This document shows, piece by piece, positions 52,583 to 63,860 of a stretch of DNA of 64,000 nucleotides; position 1 is the first letter of the stretch; the number at the start of each line of letters is the position of its first letter. The translations under genes were made by a program, and so were the position numbers. The notes under the pieces are model-generated. The model worked only from the letters and a program-made list of their open reading frames with translations. It was not told the DNA's origin and did not search any database. Source of the DNA: Ophelia neglecta (Eukaryota); NCBI GenBank assembly GCA_965285935.1, contig OZ260663.1, positions 23,498,001 through 23,562,000 on the forward strand. Reading direction: 5' to 3'.

Positions 52583-53408
52583 CGGCGACTATCAAGGCGC
52601 TGTTACAAACAAATAGATCCAGTTAAACTTACCAAATAAGGTTTAATGTATAACTTTCATTGACTGTCTGCAATCAGCTCCTATCCATGACATTTGGCGA
52701 ATAAAATGAGTTATTTTACCTTACTGCTTACCAAGTACAGAGAAAGAAGTTATGGCTTTCGAAATGTCGGACAAATGATCTTTATCTTAACAAAAAAAGA
52801 GAATATTTGTTGGAAATTAGATCTACATTGAATCCTTGTCGAGAGCGCTTAGAAAGAACGTAAGAACCAATTTGTCTTTACAAAACAAATTCAATGACCA
52901 TTATTAATTATAATTATAATAATTCAAATTCAGAGCATGCAGCACGATGTTGTGGGTGGATGGTGCCAGACTTGATGGTTCTCCTTTAACACGCTCGGAC
53001 AAATCTTATTTGATTATTTAGACACACCACTTTAAGGGTTAATCCTCTGCTTTTTAGGGGTGTTTTGCAATCTGCTCAACATTTCTAATAGAAAGACCAA
53101 TTGGACAAGTCATACTTTTTGGACATTGTTTGTCATACGAGCGCTAAATCCAAATAATTTCTTATTGTTGAGCCATCAATGACTATAATTAAAAGTAACA
53201 GAGTATAGGATAACCAATATGCTACGGACCAATACCTTTCCCAAAACTAATTTTAGGTGCTTTCGTCACATTCTATTTATATAGACAAAAGTAGGGCATG
53301 GGGAGTAATTACTATCATCCCGATATGGTACTCATGTATCACCTATAATTAGCTATAGAACCGAATGACAGAATGAGATTCTAGTCGCGCTACAGCTCGT
53401 CTTGCCTG

Positions 53409-56400
53409 TCAGCTGGTGGTAGTGGTGGTAGTGGTGGTGGTGGTTGTAGTAGTGGTTTGCCTCTTCGACCTCCCTGGAAAAAGAAAAGAAGTCTCTAGGT
53501 GTGCTTTTGTTTAGGATACTTTTGATTATCTTATTATTTACACAATTGATGCATTTGACGCATAGCAATGACATAATTGATAAAGGGGTAAAAGGCTATA
53601 AGTCGCTTTTATTTTTATTGGTAATTGTATTTGATAATATTCATTCCTAAACCGTAAGTCAACTGTTTTCAATGCATTTACTATATTGTTTTAACCTAAA
53701 CATTCCAATATAATAAAGTTACTGGAAAATGAACTTGAAATGCATAAATGATTAATATTGAATAATTTAACATATAAAAACATTTTATCACTGGTTATAA
53801 GGTCATATGAAACTGCATATATTTGCAATTAATCGCTTGACTGTATAGCTAGGTGTGTTTTTAGCTTCATTTTTACAATAGCGATGGATTCTGAAGGCTT
53901 GACACCAGACGGGATGTCCTTCCACGGGAATCGGCCAGATAATTAACAAGAAGTAGGAACGCAATAAAAATAATTGGGCTGATAACGGATCTCTGCGATA
54001 CTACACACAGAAGCACTACTTGGATTATACCAACAACAAAACATTTAATCCTATGAACCCCCCCCCCCCCCCCCCCCCCATATGCAGAACCTGAAAGAGC
54101 ATATTTCAACATCTGATACCCTAGCCCTGGTTGTTGTTCACCATGGTCAATATTATCGGAAGTAGCGCTGATGCTTCGGATTGACCAATAAGCAGCGGAA
54201 CTCCACTTATTAATTATAGAACGGGAAAATTGAAGAGGATAGAAAAGCATCGTGGGGCAAGAGGGCCTATAGCGCATTTGAATGAGCAACTTTTGATGTG
54301 AGCACCATCTAGCGAGAAAGGAAATACTGTGCTACATGCTGGAATACTTTGGAAGGCAAGAAATTCAGGCTGTCATTTTCTCCTGCAGCCACACTCTTTG
54401 ATTACTGTCTTTCTCCGTTAAATAACCGATGAAAATAAGGCATGCAAACTTTGTCCCGGGAAGGGACAGTTTCAAGTTAAATTGTGCCCGAAAAAAACTT
54501 AATACTTAGCCCGGAATACAACGTGTGGATATTATGAAGGTCGACTTAAATGTCATGTTTGTTTCTCCTTAGCCGCACTTGAAACAATGCATCAACTCTG
54601 TGTCCTGTGTCCATCATTACACTATTACAGGTACATGTACTGTAGAAATCAAAGCCGATCGTCTTGCTCGAACAACATGAAGTTACAACACTAAGGAAGT
54701 TGACGCAACTCTTGCTTTGACATAACTTAGTTGTTCTTACGTCAAGGAGTTTATTTTATGAAAGTTCACACCCCAAAATGTATTTGTATAGATGCTACAT
54801 CATAACGTCAGCGATCAAGTATTTAAAAAAGAAAAAGAATATTTAATTATATTTCTCCAGGCGGATGGAGTTTTTTTCTCGGAATATTAGTAATGGTGAT
54901 CTGTGTAAGCTACAACTGATTGCGGCACTGCACTGTATATTTGAAATTTCATTTATAATGAACTGTACGCATTGTTTCGAAAAATGCTTTTAAACAAACA
55001 ACCATGGGTATCTAATGGGGTAAACATGAAAATCAAATAAGGAAGTAATGCTTATACATTTGGGATGAACTTTCGACCCATGTACAGTGATACTCCTAGC
55101 TATCAATAGGGCAATAGGCCTACGTCATCAGATACGGCAGGAATATACTAGGACTGATCGGCGATATGAATACGTTACCCTGATTAGAAGGCTTGCGTGA
55201 AACTTGCGCGGCGGAAAACAGGTACGATATACCTACCGCATAATTATAGCACGGCTTTAATAAGGAAGTTGCCTTTAGTTTTGAATATTATTAAATACGG
55301 TTCATAGGGGAATATCAATTGACCTTGATGATAACATACCTTTCATCCGAACGTAACTAGAGAATCCCCAATAGGCGGGAACATCTTTACACAAATCTAA
55401 TGCTTCATCACTAAGAAAGTAAGTGCGGGATATTGGAACTTTTCCAACGTCTATGGTCAAAACTATACTTTCGTCGTTCCTTGTCGAGTTGACTGCTGTT
55501 GTCTGTAATGAATATCCAAAACAGTAATATGATCACGTATATTGACCGGTGTCTGGATGTTTCGAGCGGGCGCCAGTTCGAGCGGTGGCTATATTGGTCG
55601 TTTCGCCAGTACGAGCGGTGGCTATACTGGTCGTTTTCGAGCGGGGCCATCACACGTTTCGAGCGGGGCCATTTCTAGTTGGCTATGATATTAAACAGTT
55701 CCAGTTATATGGGATACACTGTACACACGACTTTTCGATCGCGACGTCGGCTGATCGTATATATACATGGCGGACATGACTGCTAGGCAAGAGACGACCT
55801 GAATATTAAGTGAATAGCAAAAAAATAATACAGTAATATAGCTACATTATCAAGATTTTAGACTAACACCTATAAAACGCCCGCTCGAAAAGCCCCCGCT
55901 CGAAAAGTCCCCCGCTCGAAATCGTACCCCCGCTCGAACTGGCGCCCGCTCGAAACGACCCGGGACCTATTGACCTGGTAAGACACTACAGTGTTTCCGT
56001 AAAATGAGATTAAAGTAGTAACCCTGGAAATAGCAAGTAATTATTACAATTAACAAGGAAAACTTAAGATAACTGTGTCGAAATTAGCGTTTGCACCTGC
56101 AGCTGATAATGGACCTTCTGTTGACGATGATGTTGCATATGATATGATACGAGACGGGTTTTAAAAGAAAGTGTTTTATTCACTTGATCTGCAAAATGCT
56201 GAAGATTATCCAAACTGTATACTACGACTGAGTGTTATATCATTTAAATGGATGCTTTATTTTAACGTTTTCCCGTATAAGTTGGAAGGTTACTGGCATG
56301 TTTATGTAGGAATTCTAATATTGATTTACCCAAGCAACAAATTCTTCACCAGACTCAAAGATCCTGTCAAATTCCTTCGGGGAAGCAACACAAGCATCCA

Positions 56401-57782
56401 CGCCTGCAGGTTTCACGACCCGGATGTTCTGGAAATGAAATTGCAAGTGAACGCTTTCACATCATACATTACGAACAGATTTCCATCAACTTTCGTTTTT
56501 ATACTATCGCCACTTGATCGTTAGTATCACTTAACAATTGAATCAATTGCAATTTTAATAGATATTACACCGAATTCATATCAACCGCGAGTATATGAAA
56601 ACAAAAGGTAAAATAATTGTAAACCAAGTTAAAAATTAATAAGTATAACAGGTTTCTCACTCGCGCGTGATCGTCAATTACGTAGGCAACACCGGCTTCA
56701 CGTTCCATCTTGTAGACAGCGACAAACGTGTTGGGGTTTGCCTGTATAAACTCTCTGACTGAATGGCCTTGGTAGTCGACAAAATCGTATTCTAGCTGTT
56801 CAAACAAAAGATGCATTCAAGCAGTTCTTTCCAAAAAACAAACATGCATGTTACTTGAACATCAGCCGACAGCGGCTGATCGCAAGCCATGCTGCCGAAA
56901 GTGGAATATAAACCTAGAAGAGATTGCAGTGACATGCAGATCTGAAATTGAAGGTAAGGTAAGGAATGTTGATGCCATCTTCTACAACACATGCTAATAC
57001 AATTGTGCCACGTGTTAGGTAATAACCCAATAAGAAGCCAACAGTTTGGAGTGTCATCCTTTCCCGCCAATCAGGGCTCAGGATTTTGGCAAAGATTTTA
57101 CGCAGGTACGTAGTATTATCAACAGGGACCATAACACTATAAGATTTAAAATATGGTAAGACGGAGCAAATTTGGCTTTCAATAACAGGAAAAATAGAAA
57201 TCCATAATGTGTTCAAATTCATGAAAAGTATTAATAACCTACTTCTCTTTTATAATAATTAGCACATGTTAACATCGTCGATCAGCGTAACAAAGATTTG
57301 CGCTGATCCATTCAGAATGAGGTGAACCAGTAACGAGAAACAGGTCAGAGACTAAATTGTCAACCTTCTTAGCACTTACTGCTGGCAGTTTCTATCTTAA
57401 AACAGTGATCGGGATAGCAAAAGTTCTTCATATCGGGCAGGCACACCTTATGGACACACAATAAGCGTGCCCCCCCCCCCTCTCTCCCCCGTCGTCCCTT
57501 TCACTGATTCAACCGCAATGATTAGGTCAAAGTATCGTTTATAGTAACTAGGGACACTAAATTGTGCTGTAAATTGACTCCATAGTTTAATCAAATTCCC
57601 ATTGACTGTTTCTATACCATCAGTTGCGCTTATTGTACATTTTTATTTAAGAATTCACAATCTTGGCCTACCTGTCTCAGAGCGGCAGAATTATCGACCA
57701 TGCCACTGTCCTGTTCCGCATTCGTCGACAAGGCCAGGAGAAACGCCATGACCAAACATGACACTTGCCCTAACACAGACAT
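53409..57782 (-). CDS. Secreted BRICHOS-domain precursor A (190 aa): signal peptide - BRICHOS - RSKR - Q(T)14S
   Basis: Exons 57782-57672, 56795-56661, 56428-56330, 55502-55340, 53473-53409; all GT-AG, phases 0,0,0,1. Protein MSVLGQVSCLVMAFLLALSTNAEQDSGMVDNSAALRQ/LEYDFVDYQGHSVREFIQANPNTFVAVYKMEREAGVAYVIDDHAR/NIRVVKPAGVDACVASPKEFDRIFESGEEFVAW/TTAVNSTRNDESIVLTIDVGKVPISRTYFLSDEALDLCKDVPAYWGFSSYVRMKG/RSKRQTTTTTTTTTTTTTTS. BRICHOS hallmarks: conserved Asp (VIDDH), first Cys (DACV) and LCxxxPxYW. Confidence 0.85.
55548..55967. mobile_element. 420-bp foldback-type MITE with 8-bp TSD in intron 3 of BRICHOS gene A
   Basis: About 38-bp TIRs (core GTTTCGAGCGGGCGCCAGTTCGAGCGG) and subterminal TTCGAGCGG repeats. 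TATTGACC is duplicated at 55540-55547 and 55968-55975. Paralogue B has a single ATTGACC empty site near 62001. Confidence 0.9.
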
Positions 57783-60030: not shown

Positions 60031-63000
60031 TCAGCTGCCGACATTGATGAAGGCGGAAGTGGTTTTGCTGGTTTGCCTCTTGGACCTCCCTAAAAGAAGA
60101 ACATTATTCTGTAAGTGTGTCCTCGTTCAGCACATTTAAATTAACTTGTTATTTATGTAATATATTTAGTGATTAATTAGATGCATCGAGTAATGACTGA
60201 TTCAATAAAGGTTATTAAGATAAAATGCTGTCAGACGTACTATTTTTATAAGTAATTTCTATTTCACCCTGTTCACTTCAACACTGTAAGTCGATTAATT
60301 TCCTTCAATTCACTATATAATTGTACATTCTAATATAAAAAAGTTATAGGCATGAACTTGAAAATTAGATTAACATTGAATAACATAAATTCAAAAACAG
60401 CGAATCTTCACTGATTATATGGTCACATGAATATGCATGTATTTGCCATTAAAATATATAGATGAAATAGGCGAGTTTCCAGCTTTATTTCTACAACAGC
60501 AATGGAATCTGTAGGCTTGACACCAATGGGAGGTCTTCCACGCTAAACGGCCAGATAACGTTTAGAAGTAGGTAGAAACAATTGGAATTGGGCTTAGAAC
60601 GGATACCTGCGATACTACGAACAAAGGTTTACCGGAATGAATATGTTATCACAATTCCAATCCTATGAAAAAGCTCGTAGAAGGATGACCTGAATGCACA
60701 TACAGGCTGACATCTGACACCCCCGCTTTGGTTATGATTCTATCTAGTTCTACACCATGGTAATTATTATACAAGGCAACGCTGATGCTACGGATTGTTA
60801 AAACAACAGGAGAGCATACCCGGCAATTAAATACAAAATCGGGAATCAAGCATTTTTCATTATTCACCGGGAACCTGCAGTCGAAGTCACACTAACATCT
60901 ACCCCTAGCTTCCTAACAGTACAATTTGGTGACAAACTCGCGATACTAAAATCTTAAAACTCAGCCGTCTACTGCTGAGGTGTTCACAATTGATCGGGAT
61001 CATAGATCGCTTTTGCCATATGTATATTTCACCACAACCAATTGAGGGAGATTTATTTCTGAAAACCCCATGCGCAAACAAATCGATTAGTAATTATGAG
61101 GTTCTCGGTCTTAATAGCTACACAATCAACGAGTATCCTGTTTGACTGGAGGAAAAAAATGTCGGAAAAATAATCTTACAGCACCATCTTTGATTAATAA
61201 TCCCATACAAATATCTACCGTTAGTAAGGCAACCACACTGATTAATAAAATCACCTGTTATTATTTATCAGGTACTCAAATATTCTCTCAGCATCCAACC
61301 CACTGATATCTCGGATCATTTTCTTGCATATTGCAAGTTCGAAGACGGATATTTAGTTTATGTACCTAAGTGTTATATAACTCTTCTGACATTGTTTTAT
61401 GATTGAATTAACTAACTGGGAATCTATGATAACTCCAAATAAATTCGACACTGCATAATAAGTTGTTCGATATTTCATCTACGTGAACGTCTTGTTTCGA
61501 CAGATGCTTTTCTTTGCAGAGAGGGCAATAAACTACTCAAACAGAAGAAACCATCTGTTCTAACAAGCTATGACGTAATGCTTATATATTTTGATGACAT
61601 ATGTAAAGCGTCTAGCTATCAACAAGACACGGCGACAGGCAAATAATATTTCTTACAAAAAATTGTAAGAATTTAGATAATTATCCTGGTTACCGGGTAG
61701 AAATCAGTTGCATAATATCTAGCATGGCGCAGCTTTGATAGAATTTGACTCTGCTACACTGTTCGCACGAGCATATCGATACAGTTTAATGACAACTAAC
61801 CATTTGTCCGACCGTAGCTAGACTCCCAATAGACAGGAACACCTCTACACACATCTAATGCCTCATCACTAAGAAAGTCTGTACGGTATATTGGGAGTTT
61901 ACCCACGTCTATAGTCAAAACTATCCTTTCTTCGGTCCTTGTCGAGTTTTCTCCTGTTGCCTGTAATAAAATTGTATTAAACAATCTCATGGTCAGGTTA
62001 ATTGACCTCACAAGAAAAAGCAGTGTTTCTGAAGAATAAAATACAATTGTAACCCTGTAAATGTTAAATTTGTTACAATTTTAGCTACAAAAACGACCAA
62101 AATAGCCGTGATGTACAATAGCGTTTCGATTTGCCGCAGAGGTGGAAATCAATTTTGTTCGCTAAACGATGTATTTGAAGATAACATAATAGAGGCCGTT
62201 ATGGATTATGAGAGAAAACTTTATATAGGGAGCCATATATTCCCTTGCCCTACGGACTGCTGAAGAATAGCCAAAATCGATAAGTCAGAGCGCCACGTTG
62301 TTTGAATAACTGCTATTTTTAAAGTTCTTTTTCGTATCAGTAACAGTTTAAAGGTTCCTGTCATGTGTACATTCTGATATTAACTTACCCAAGCAACAAA
62401 TTCTTCACCAGAGTGAAACCTCTTGCCACACTCCTTTGGAGAAGCAACACAGGCATCGACGTCCGCAGGTTTCACAACCCGAATGTTCTGAAAATAAAAT
62501 TGTACGTACAAATTATTCACACCATTCTTTATATTGTGAGATGATTTAAGTGTGACTGCGGTTCGTCCACTCTAGTTTTTTTAAACATGTTCCCTTTACT
62601 TTTTTATAAGGCAAAATTAGCAAATATTGTTTGCAAATGCAACAGCAATTACACCGAATTCTTAATAGTCCCAGGTACATAAAATAAAGTAATATAGTGG
62701 TAACACAAGTTATCAATTAATAATTATAGCTGGTTTCTAACTCGATCGTGATCATCGATGACGTAATCGATTCCGTCTTCATTTTCCACCTTGTAGACAA
62801 CGACAAACGTGTTGGGGTTTGCTTGAATAACTTCTCTGACTGAATGCCCTTGGTAGTCGACAAAATCGTATTCGAGCTGTTTAAATGAAAGATCCATTTA
62901 TTAAAGCAGTTTTTGAAATGAAAACAAACTGTATGCCGAGTGTCCTGAGAGTAAAGAGTAATATAAGTCGGTACAATATTTTATGCAATATTCATATAAG

Positions 63001-63860
63001 ATAGCTGCGAATATTGGCGAGCATTAGATGTGGGGCCATATGTTTTTTGAGACAATGAGATAATTCAAGATCTCAAGAGGCAGACTTCTTATTTCTCAAA
63101 TTTCGGAGCTAGGTTATTTTTCTTCCACAGTGCTGGAAGTTCATTTTTAGATCTATGATTTCAGTACGTTTTTTCTGATGATTTTGATTGTTACTTGTTT
63201 AAATTAGCTGCTAGTTTTATTTGTCTGTTCTTATAGTTAATATTATGCTTGTAGGCCCTGATATAATAGGAAGAATAAAGATGATAATAATAATAATAAT
63301 CACAATAATGGTTATGACATGTGAAAATCTTCAATTATCTTAACAGCCATTGGTAATCATCAATTCAAAATGAGGAGAACCAGTGAAACAGGTCTGTGAC
63401 TGAAATGCCAACTTTCTTAGCGCGCGTAAAACAAACGGCAGCAGGAAAGCAGGAAAGCAGGAAAGCAGAAGGGAATCTGTCCTGCAGCAGGAAAGCGGCA
63501 GGAAAGCAGCAGGAAAACAGTAGGAAAGCAAAAAGTTGTTCTTATCGCCGAGGGAGAAATTTTGTTGGAGTGCGAATGAAACGTCGCCCCTTCCACCATG
63601 TACGTCTAGTCCTGCTTCATTCATTCCCAGTCATAAAGCCATAAAGGGACACTATTGTTTTAATTAACTTTAAAAAATCCCCAATGACTGTTTATATATA
63701 TACCATCGGATGTGTTTGCTTTACACTGTTATTTTAGAATTTAGAAGGTTTGCCTGCCTGTTTTTTCTTTGTCAACCATACCACTAACCTGTTCCCCCTT
63801 GGTCGAAGAGGCCAAGAGAAACGCCATGACCAATAAGGACACTTGCTCTAACACCGACAT
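60031..63860 (-). CDS. Secreted BRICHOS-domain precursor B (174 aa): signal peptide - BRICHOS - RSKR - QTSKTTSAFINVGS
   Basis: Exons 63860-63789, 62876-62742, 62487-62389, 61960-61801, 60089-60031; GT-AG, same phases as A. Protein MSVLEQVSLLVMAFLLASSTKGEQ/LEYDFVDYQGHSVREVIQANPNTFVVVYKVENEDGIDYVIDDHDR/NIRVVKPADVDACVASPKECGKRFHSGEEFVAW/ATGENSTRTEERIVLTIDVGKLPIYRTDFLSDEALDVCRGVPVYWESSYGRTNG/RSKRQTSKTTSAFINVGS. Confidence 0.85.
63438..63530. repeat. GCAGGAAA 8-bp tandem repeat in intron 1 of gene B
   Basis: About 7 exact or near-exact GCAGGAAA units; not seen in gene A. Confidence 0.8.

Follow-up and report, generated by a model that had tools for sequence, protein, structure and literature searches.

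The BRICHOS domain, whose fold has a central beta sheet set between helices, is studied as an anti-amyloid chaperone and, to our knowledge, few of its natural clients are known: the poly-Val segment of SP-C, the Bri23 peptide and the antimicrobial peptides of worms. Bri2/ITM2B (and likewise Bri3) is a type II membrane protein in which cleavage at a furin site behind the BRICHOS domain sets free a short peptide with a high beta propensity (Bri23), and the BRICHOS domain of Bri2 is thought to chaperone this tail. In mucin-type PTS tracts and in antifreeze glycoproteins, Thr arrays are O-glycosylated and stiff, and small glycopeptides are released from precursors. The precursors of the annelid BRICHOS-related peptides (arenicins, alvinellacin, capitellacin, nicomicins and the HfBRI peptides) comprise a signal peptide, an acidic BRICHOS proregion, a dibasic or furin-type site and a short C-terminal peptide (PMC10745061, PMC6265681). 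These C-terminal peptides span 18-91 residues in H. filiformis, and the annelid BRICHOS-AMPs of a given species carry many divergent cargoes (PMC10745061, PMC6265681). The BRICHOS domain itself comprises about 100 residues, of which one Asp and two Cys are strictly conserved (PMC6265681), and the poly-Val segment of proSP-C is a client of this domain (PMC8946693).

The gene described here, gene A, is located in the window that we analyzed, a 64-kb stretch of the Ophelia neglecta genome, and consists of five exons with 190 codons (Table 1). Its predicted product combines a signal-peptide-like N-terminus, an acidic BRICHOS proregion, the tetrapeptide RSKR and a tail of 16 residues. Every splice site is canonical, and the product joined from the exons, which was used for translation and for the determination of charge and dN/dS, is free of internal stop codons. 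A hydrophobic core at residues 7-18 (mean Kyte-Doolittle value 2.8), conserved in the tandem paralogue B, is followed by a cleavage-like site of small residues, and the N-terminus is hence predicted by hydropathy to be a signal peptide. The proregion has a net charge of -6, a pI of 4.95 and exactly two Cys residues. The conserved block in intron 4 is non-coding, since A and B differ in it by 1- and 2-nt indels; the possibility of a hidden exon in this intron was therefore rejected, and the only other phase-1 candidate in it is preceded by a poor acceptor and is absent from B.

Table 1. Features of gene A and its tandem paralogue B (positions in the window).
Feature	Position	Strand	Remarks
Gene A exon 1 (coding part): ATG, signal-peptide-like, 37 codons, phase-0 end	57672..57782	minus	Alignment with B; CAG acceptor before ATG, GTAGGC donor
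Gene A exon 2: first BRICHOS part, ends in invariant Asp-Asp	56661..56795	minus	D41/D42 invariant in 15 paralogues
Gene A exon 3: mid-BRICHOS, first invariant Cys	56330..56428	minus	C13 invariant in 14 paralogues
Gene A exon 4: BRICHOS C-terminal part with second invariant Cys, C-x3-P-x-Y-W motif and NST sequon	55340..55502	minus	Pfam, splice phase
Gene A intron 4, 1,866 nt	53474..55339	minus	Includes A/B-conserved block at about 53876-54004
Splice acceptor of terminal exon	AG 53475-53474	minus	Strong: pyrimidine tract, then CAG
Start of terminal exon: GG completing Gly codon, then RSKR (R-x-K-R proprotein-convertase motif)	53460..53473	minus	Same motif in B
RSKR codons AGG TCG AAG AGG	53471-53460	minus	
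Gln + 14 Thr codons, compound (ACC/ACT/ACA) trinucleotide repeat	53415..53459	minus	Sequence and Tandem Repeats Finder
Gln codon CAA	53459-53457	minus	
14 Thr codons: ACC x9, ACT x4, ACA x1	53456-53415	minus	
Ser codon AGC + TGA stop (TGA 53411-53409)	53409..53414	minus	Common to B; CAGCTGAC context conserved
Candidate poly(A) signal variant TATAAA, 127 nt past stop	53276..53281	minus	B counterpart: ATTAAA at 126 nt
Tandem paralogue B, gene span	60031..63860	minus	Plan as in A; ends in RSKR + 14-residue Thr/Ser-rich, Cys-free peptide
Paralogue B exons	63860-63789, 62876-62742, 62487-62389, 61960-61801, 60089-60031	minus	

The first-pass annotation had placed the unusual tail of gene A in a BRICHOS precursor, and this assignment was supported by the hallmark residues of the domain and by single-exon profile matches within the family. 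The Asp-Asp pair that ends exon 2 does not vary among 15 paralogues, nor does the Cys residue of exon 3 among 14 or that of exon 4 among 16. Exon 4 of gene A alone matches the Pfam BRICHOS profile (PF04089; profile positions 62-91) with 13.5 bits and an E-value of 0.085, a score obtained with a single exon of a domain that is split over three and to be read against the Pfam gathering score of 25 bits. The exon-4 pieces of 11 of the 16 paralogues match this profile, with a best E-value of 0.0019, and exon-2 pieces scanned alone against Pfam gave no BRICHOS match. A PDB profile search with exon 4 retrieved no meaningful relative, and a phmmer search with the 54 residues of this exon against 1.84 billion protein representatives returned no relative, just two spurious repeat proteins; hence, there are no orthologues through which conservation of the tail could be traced.

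Within the genome, the plan of a phase-1 terminal exon, an RxKR motif and a short hypervariable peptide is found in ten further genes (11 with gene A), a count in which about half of the genes of the C5 cluster are without a confidently assigned terminal exon. Among the other family members are some whose tails are cationic and contain Trp or Cys. Two paralogues, the C12 and C2 genes, possess Val/Ile runs at the position of the Thr run of gene A; in their cargo segments, short-repeat slippage is evident from (GTT)4 and (GTTATC)n, respectively. For the C2 gene, a candidate RARR-QT exon positioned 195 nt past exon 4 was dropped in favor of a terminal exon that is common to the C12 gene, as is the conserved 3'UTR. 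Proprotein-convertase P domains are present at a minimum of six loci in the genome.

Read directly from the sequence, the last exon of gene A (53473-53409, minus strand) is (G)-RSKR-Q-T14-S-TGA, identical in coordinates and content to what the first-pass annotation had reported. The computed properties of the predicted 16-residue peptide are a net charge of 0, no Cys and 94% Thr/Ser. The length of T14 is that of the assembly; DNA reads (three runs, one sample) confirm the flanks and skip 53410-53459 as a repeat. The Thr frame is the correct frame of this terminal exon. The exon-4 donor (AAAG/GTATGT) leaves one base over, which places intron 4 in phase 1; the same holds for paralogue B and for 19 of the 20 other automatically called BRICHOS paralogues of the genome, and the remaining one has a phase-1 alternative. 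RSKR-Q is identical between A and B, with one synonymous TCG/TCC difference, and both genes use the same TGA. They differ in length by 6 nt before this stop codon, and the first indels past it measure 1 nt and 2 nt. It is this combination of phase-1 donors, a common RSKR-Q and TGA, and indels that are not multiples of three only past the stop that supports the frame originally proposed. The proposed furin-type site stands as well, its motif being present in A, in B and in ten other family genes.

The Thr run is real and far beyond chance, yet it is a slippage-type repeat rather than ordinary coding sequence. Its mixture of ACC, ACT and ACA codons had been taken as a sign that it is not a microsatellite, an argument that we had to discard: compound ACC/ACT arrays of at least ten units are common in this genome, and the tract has a 9-nt internal periodicity. 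Tandem Repeats Finder reports 53414-53456 as an array of period 3 with 14.3 copies and 82% matches, and additionally as one of period 9. The tract is the only trinucleotide array within the window; genome-wide, the ACY x10 pattern has 2,502 matches, mixed ACC/ACT arrays among them. Hence, the mixed codons are no sign of selection, and the fact that all of the codon variation is synonymous (P between about 0.004 and 0.04 by our own estimate, depending on the number of independent events) is weak evidence, because ACC and ACT are mixed in other arrays and the units were copied in 9-nt blocks. We therefore downgraded the argument that synonymous-only variation reflects selection for Thr, also in view of the ACC-ACT seed that B already has at the homologous place. 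Nor does the presence of the tract call for selection, since mutationally unstable repeats of this type are common in the genome and lie mostly outside coding sequence, and in-frame alleles would be uninformative in this respect because trinucleotide slippage always preserves the frame. We envisage that replication slippage enlarged a compound (ACC/ACT)n microsatellite within a mature-peptide segment that was already evolving fast, so that the run took the place of the central part of an ancestral peptide, rich in Thr/Ser and resembling that of present-day B; the flanks (RSKR-Q before and Ser-TGA after the run) would have stayed fixed.

Our best explanation, to which we give about an even chance, is that positions 53409-53473 are the last, coding exon of an intact gene with five exons for a secreted BRICHOS precursor, from which furin-like cleavage would release a 16-residue peptide with a microsatellite-derived and likely O-glycosylated Thr run. 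By analogy to proprotein convertases in general, to Bri2 and to the annelid BRICHOS-AMP precursors, a furin-like convertase would cut past RSKR in the late secretory pathway and thereby set free the neutral peptide, whose N-terminal Gln, conserved in B, could cyclize to pyroglutamate. Exposed in the Golgi, the Thr run would be a prime substrate for mucin-type O-GalNAc transferases, so that the released product might be a short, stiff and heavily O-glycosylated peptide, while the BRICHOS domain of the precursor itself may keep the beta-prone tail soluble before glycosylation. GalNAc-transferases prefer Pro-flanked sites, a preference that the tail of gene A does not satisfy, and O-glycans adjoining the convertase site could even block cleavage. 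Without glycans, polyThr precipitates as insoluble beta sheets, and glycosylated polyThr is extended and rigid (PMC12266245). Some indirect support for a beta-branched client of BRICHOS comes from these beta sheets (PMC12266245), together with the Val/Ile runs of the two paralogues.

It is highly improbable that the terminal exon is read in another frame, whereby a Pro/Leu-rich tail ending in QDEL would yield an ER-retained BRICHOS chaperone from which no peptide is released. An acceptor at 53471-53470 (a weak GAG 4 nt downstream; exon start 53469), taken together with the phase-1 carry-over base, does produce an open frame with such an ER-retrieval-like end; a phase-0 donor would be the other route to it. 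However, the CAG upstream of it, preceded by a long pyrimidine tract, makes a much stronger acceptor, and exon 4 offers a single, poor candidate for a phase-0 donor, which matches 4/9 consensus positions against 8/9 for the phase-1 donor by our own count on the sequence. Moreover, the corresponding frame of B extends over about 60 codons and has no DEL end, 1- and 2-nt indels separate A and B in this region, and RxKR falls in the phase-1 frame in ten other family genes. The phase-0 frame with its QDEL end, an objection that the first-pass annotation had raised against itself, was rejected: it needs another splice phase or the weak GAG acceptor and is not conserved in B. A His/Tyr frame was rejected along with it, in view of the splice phase, the failure of B to conserve it and the indels that are not multiples of three past the common TGA. 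That gene A is not expressed or has recently become a pseudogene, its open frame a mere leftover, we consider improbable. It is true that intron 3 contains a high-copy MITE of 420 bp, just 46 nt from the exon-4 acceptor, and that allelic differences in exon 4, four amino-acid changes included, are as numerous as in the adjoining intron (DNA reads, one sample). These observations have to be balanced against an intact frame of 190 codons, canonical sequences at all five splice-site pairs, and the preservation of both the invariant BRICHOS residues and the conserved NST sequon. Furthermore, the BRICHOS exons of A and B yield a dN/dS of 0.27 at a dS of 0.47, and lineage-specific amino-acid changes number 6 in A and 7 in B when judged with the closest outgroups (10 and 6 against the family majority). 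Given this dN/dS value and the absence of rate asymmetry, gene A is unlike a decaying copy.

Although we would not bet on it, the tail may be a tolerated slippage product, encoded in the Thr frame and devoid of a function of its own. The microsatellite would then have overrun the cargo of one duplicate, the tail would be cleaved off and degraded or the copy would be starting to lose its role, and any selection would act on the BRICHOS proregion only. In favor of this view, compound ACY microsatellites like this tract are typical of the genome, the ancestral role can be covered by the sister copy B with its still ordinary, mixed peptide, and the search for relatives described above found no orthologue. 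The cargo segments of the family also change rapidly, in part through slippage of short repeats, as in the C12 and C2 genes. However, with a useless tail one would expect relaxed constraint on a proregion that escorts only its own tail, unless the expansion is recent, and the BRICHOS exons of A evolve without acceleration relative to B at the dN/dS value given above. The five codons of the run that are not ACC still encode Thr, and the tail has kept its conserved Gln at the start and Ser at the end, which likewise speaks against a functionless tail. There is a slim chance that the free peptide is a functional fibril former (a functional amyloid, cement or tube material) or an ice-binding/antifreeze peptide. 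The insoluble beta sheets of polyThr (PMC12266245) and the Val/Ile runs at the tail position of the paralogues would fit such a role, as would aggregation driven by Thr-rich C-terminal tails and poly-TA (PMC11761134 and a Mol Cell 2024 paper cited there). Fourteen residues are short, though, glycosylation in the secretory pathway would oppose fibrils, and known ice binders have a regular TxT or Ala-Ala-Thr spacing that the tail lacks.

A bolder proposal, which we advance as a doubtful one, concerns the family. In this genome, a set of naturally occurring BRICHOS precursors may carry beta-branched runs as cargoes to be released by furin (T14 in A, Val/Ile in the C12 and C2 genes), with BRICHOS as the dedicated escort of homopolymer-like, amyloid-prone peptides; the poly-Thr member might mature into a densely O-glycosylated mini-mucin with a pyroGlu cap, or into a functional fibril. 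We know of no BRICHOS protein for which such a homopolymer-like cargo class has been described. If gene A is expressed, it would provide a natural BRICHOS precursor that is paired with a pure, polar, beta-branched homopolymer, and together with its ordinary-tailed sister B and the Val/Ile paralogues it would form a comparative set for BRICHOS recognition and for chaperone/client co-evolution. If it is silent, or if the tail is junk, the tract would be an ordinary coding microsatellite. Microsatellite slippage that rewrites a cargo exon in a single step and leaves the cleavage site and the stop codon in place would offer a simple route to peptide novelty.

Gene A shares features with each of the systems considered at the outset. 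With mucin-type PTS tracts and antifreeze glycoproteins it has in common a dense Thr array in a predicted secreted protein; unlike in these, the array is a single run of 14 residues without Pro or Ala spacers. As in proSP-C, a beta-branched, aggregation-prone run stands beside the BRICHOS domain of its own precursor, and the C12 and C2 paralogues even have Val/Ile runs. However, the client segment of proSP-C is an N-terminal transmembrane helix, hydrophobic and palmitoylated, whereas the run of gene A is polar, C-terminal and placed behind a convertase site. The order of BRICHOS domain, furin-type site and short tail is that of Bri2/ITM2B, but gene A has a cleavable-looking signal peptide instead of an N-terminal type II anchor, and its tail is homopolymeric where that of Bri2 is mixed. 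Compared by architecture, the neutral, Cys-free and almost exclusively Thr/Ser-containing cargo of gene A differs from the annelid BRICHOS-AMPs, which are cationic, often Cys-stabilized and antimicrobial, and, since it is neither amphipathic nor cationic, it is unlikely to attack membranes; yet, like the precursors of these peptides, gene A combines a signal-peptide-like N-terminus and an acidic BRICHOS proregion with an RSKR motif located 16 residues before the stop codon.

The terminal exon of gene A, the minus-strand BRICHOS precursor gene of the window, is preceded by a long run of pyrimidines and by a CAG acceptor whose AG is at 53475-53474, and it reads GG, AGG TCG AAG AGG, CAA, 14 Thr codons (ACC nine times, ACT four times, ACA once), AGC and TGA, ending at 53409. 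This minus-strand reading exactly matches, in coordinates and content, the RSKR-Q-T14-S-stop exon that the first-pass annotation had described. In Tandem Repeats Finder, 53414-53456 is a repeat of period 3 (14.3 copies, 82% matches) that has a sub-structure of period 9, and it is the sole trinucleotide array within the 64 kb. The repeat is open in all three frames (Thr; Pro/Leu-rich, running into QDEL-stop; His/Tyr-rich), so that the upstream exon must dictate which of them is read.

Comparison of the region with itself revealed gene B, a tandem paralogue positioned about 6.5 kb upstream of gene A on the same strand. A/B alignments combined with exact splice-site mapping gave five exons per gene, bordered throughout by canonical AG/GT, and joined frames without an internal stop of 190 (gene A) and 174 (gene B) residues. 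We used the joined exons for translation, charge and substitution counts, and ran the database scans on single exons.

Exon coordinates of genes A and B in the window, from A/B alignment and splice sites
Exon	Gene A	Gene B	Strand
1	57782-57672	63860-63789	minus
2	56795-56661	62876-62742	minus
3	56428-56330	62487-62389	minus
4	55502-55340	61960-61801	minus
5	53473-53409	60089-60031	minus

Exon 1 of gene A is 13 codons longer than its counterpart (57672-57710 versus 63789-63800). Gene B has gained a GT donor at the homologous position through a GAC-to-GTT change, and the position of the gene A donor is GC in gene B; on these sequences, the length difference looks like a donor shift after the duplication. 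An intronic block (53876-54004 in gene A, 60500-60618 in gene B) is about 80% conserved, more than the intron around it. Read depth marks it as single-copy, and as indels of 1 and 2 nt separate the versions of the two genes, it is non-coding; it may be a regulatory element.

Exon 4 ends in AAAG/GTATGT in gene A and in AATG/GTTAGT in gene B, leaving one base over in each, and intron 4 is hence in phase 1. Together with the GG of the terminal exon the carried-over base forms a Gly codon, from which the frame continues as RSKR-Q-T14-S-stop in gene A and, in gene B, as RSKR-Q and 13 further residues, rich in Thr/Ser and free of Cys, that likewise end in Ser-TGA, within a conserved CAGCTGAC context. 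Within RSKR the genes differ in a single codon, TCG in A and TCC in B; this change is silent in the Thr frame and would be an Arg/Pro replacement in the QDEL frame. In the alignment, the stretches between the common Gln codon and the common stop differ by 6 nt, while the first indels directly 3' of the TGA are of 1 nt and 2 nt, as would be expected of a TGA that ends translation. About 20 further genes in the genome share the three-exon BRICHOS layout; automatic calling placed the exon-4 donor in phase 1 for 19 of 20, and the remaining gene offers a phase-1 donor as an alternative. The terminal exon, located for 10 of these paralogues (11 with gene A), starts in phase 1 in all cases and encodes a short linker, an R-x-K/R-R motif and then a peptide of 13-40 residues. 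A second AG lies 4 nt inside the terminal exon (53469-53471), and a shift to it would yield a Pro/Leu-rich tail with an ER-retrieval-like QDEL-stop at 53388-53402. Reading this frame needs either that weak GAG acceptor or a poor phase-0 donor; in gene B it is open for about 60 codons and has no DEL end. Because the paralogue does not conserve it, the QDEL end is probably a coincidence. Taken together, splice phase, the A/B comparison and the other family members make the Thr frame very likely the correct one.

The match of gene A exon 4, scanned as a single exon, to the Pfam BRICHOS profile is weak and covers the C-terminal third (E 0.085); 11 of 16 paralogue exon-4 pieces match as well (best E 0.0019). 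In the family alignments, exon 2 closes with a pair of Asp residues that never vary, exon 3 has a single Cys of this kind, and exon 4 has a C-x3-P-x-Y-W motif whose Cys and Pro are likewise invariant; one Asp and two Cys are the only strictly conserved residues of BRICHOS domains (PMC6265681). The N-terminus of gene A is signal-peptide-like. The acidic proregion, the BRICHOS-bearing part, has a net charge of -6, a pI of 4.95, two Cys in all and an NST sequon kept in gene B. Proprotein-convertase P domains are encoded at at least six loci in the genome. Coding capacity, the phase of splicing, a cleavage motif and the hallmarks of the domain can be read from the DNA of gene A, and its predicted plan is a signal peptide, an acidic BRICHOS proregion, a dibasic/furin site and a short C-terminal peptide.

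Across the BRICHOS exons, genes A and B differ by a dS of 0.47 and a dN of 0.126 (dN/dS 0.27). Polarised amino-acid changes number 6 A-specific and 7 B-specific with the two closest paralogues as reference, and 10 and 6, respectively, with the family majority; gene A evolves no faster than gene B. The sequencing runs found to cover the locus, all of them DNA, show that the sample carries a second haplotype, in which exon 4 of gene A has seven differences: three synonymous, four conservative replacements and none frame-breaking. Intron 3 of gene A harbors a 420-bp element (55548-55967) that is bounded by inverted repeats of 41 nt and contains tandem repeats of 33 nt and 16 nt; its read depth is in the thousands, versus about 20 in the flanks, and contigs break off exactly at its borders. 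This high-copy MITE inserted 46 nt from the exon-4 acceptor and is absent from gene B.

The Thr tract is built from an ACC base unit with ACT and ACA variants and copied ACC-ACC-ACT blocks; the homologous spot in gene B is ACC-ACT. Its mixed codons had been taken as a sign of non-microsatellite origin. They do not support this view, since many of the genome's (ACY)x10 matches (2,502 overlapping, versus 1,209 for the reversed control) are mixed ACC/ACT arrays and such mixing is thus usual for repeats of this kind. Short-repeat DNA, (GTT)4 and (GTTATC)n, is also present in the cargo of the two closest outgroup genes, between well-conserved linkers, RPKR sites and 3'UTRs, which indicates that the cargo of this family turns over fast, partly by slippage. 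The main rival to a functional cargo, a tolerated slippage product without a role, carries roughly comparable weight. That all five departures from ACC fall at the third codon position speaks at best weakly for selection on Thr (estimated P about 0.004 to 0.04, according to the number of events taken as independent).

Most likely, the precursor would enter the ER, and its BRICHOS domain would shield the C-terminal run, which is prone to beta structure; once in the Golgi, the run would be a likely target of mucin-type O-glycosylation, and a furin-like convertase would cleave after RSKR, releasing a peptide whose N-terminal Gln, common to A and B, could form pyroglutamate. Unglycosylated polyThr reportedly precipitates as insoluble beta sheets, while the glycosylated form is extended and rigid (PMC12266245), and aggregation driven by Thr-rich C-terminal tails and poly-TA is reported in PMC11761134 and its reference 45. 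By analogy with these reports, both a client in need of a chaperone and a glycopeptide end product would be chemically reasonable.

The closest paralogues of genes A and B, L050 (G000:C12:49447453-49447526, plus strand) and L048 (G000:C2:83876758-83876834, minus strand), end in RPKR and 14-15-residue tails of nearly all Val/Ile/Leu runs, encoded in part by (GTT)4 and (GTTATC)n. Linker and 3'UTR are strongly conserved between the two genes, whereas the tails are only about 50% identical. By sequence these tails look like SP-C-style poly-Val clients behind a furin site; conceivably, they are GPI signals or membrane anchors instead. A further cluster (G000:C5:86570001-86720000; L033-L047) comprises about 17 BRICHOS genes in a large inverted duplication, whose minus-strand genes lie at 86.574-86.628 Mb and whose mirrored near-copies lie on the plus strand at 86.636-86.711 Mb. 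In several of them RVKR/RMKR precedes a cationic, Trp-rich tail resembling an antimicrobial peptide, and exon 3 contains in-frame stops in at least two copies. BRICHOS-profile matches also cluster at G000:C2:42103952-42113358, C2:46267379-46322370 and C8:79461929-79470299; as before, the start of the exon falls near profile position 50-52, so that the family exceeds the A-like set and has an old intron position in common.

Full-text literature searches found no poly-Thr or Thr-rich BRICHOS client. The architecture of the gene A precursor is already known; its cargo is not. Annelid BRICHOS-related antimicrobial peptides are described with the same plan, and 13 of them, widely divergent in their tails, occur in Heteromastus filiformis alone (PMC10745061). 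A more distant architectural likeness is Bri2, from which furin releases Bri23. In contrast to the cationic antimicrobial peptide that defines BRI-AMPs, the cargo of gene A is neutral, Cys-free and nearly a homopolymer.
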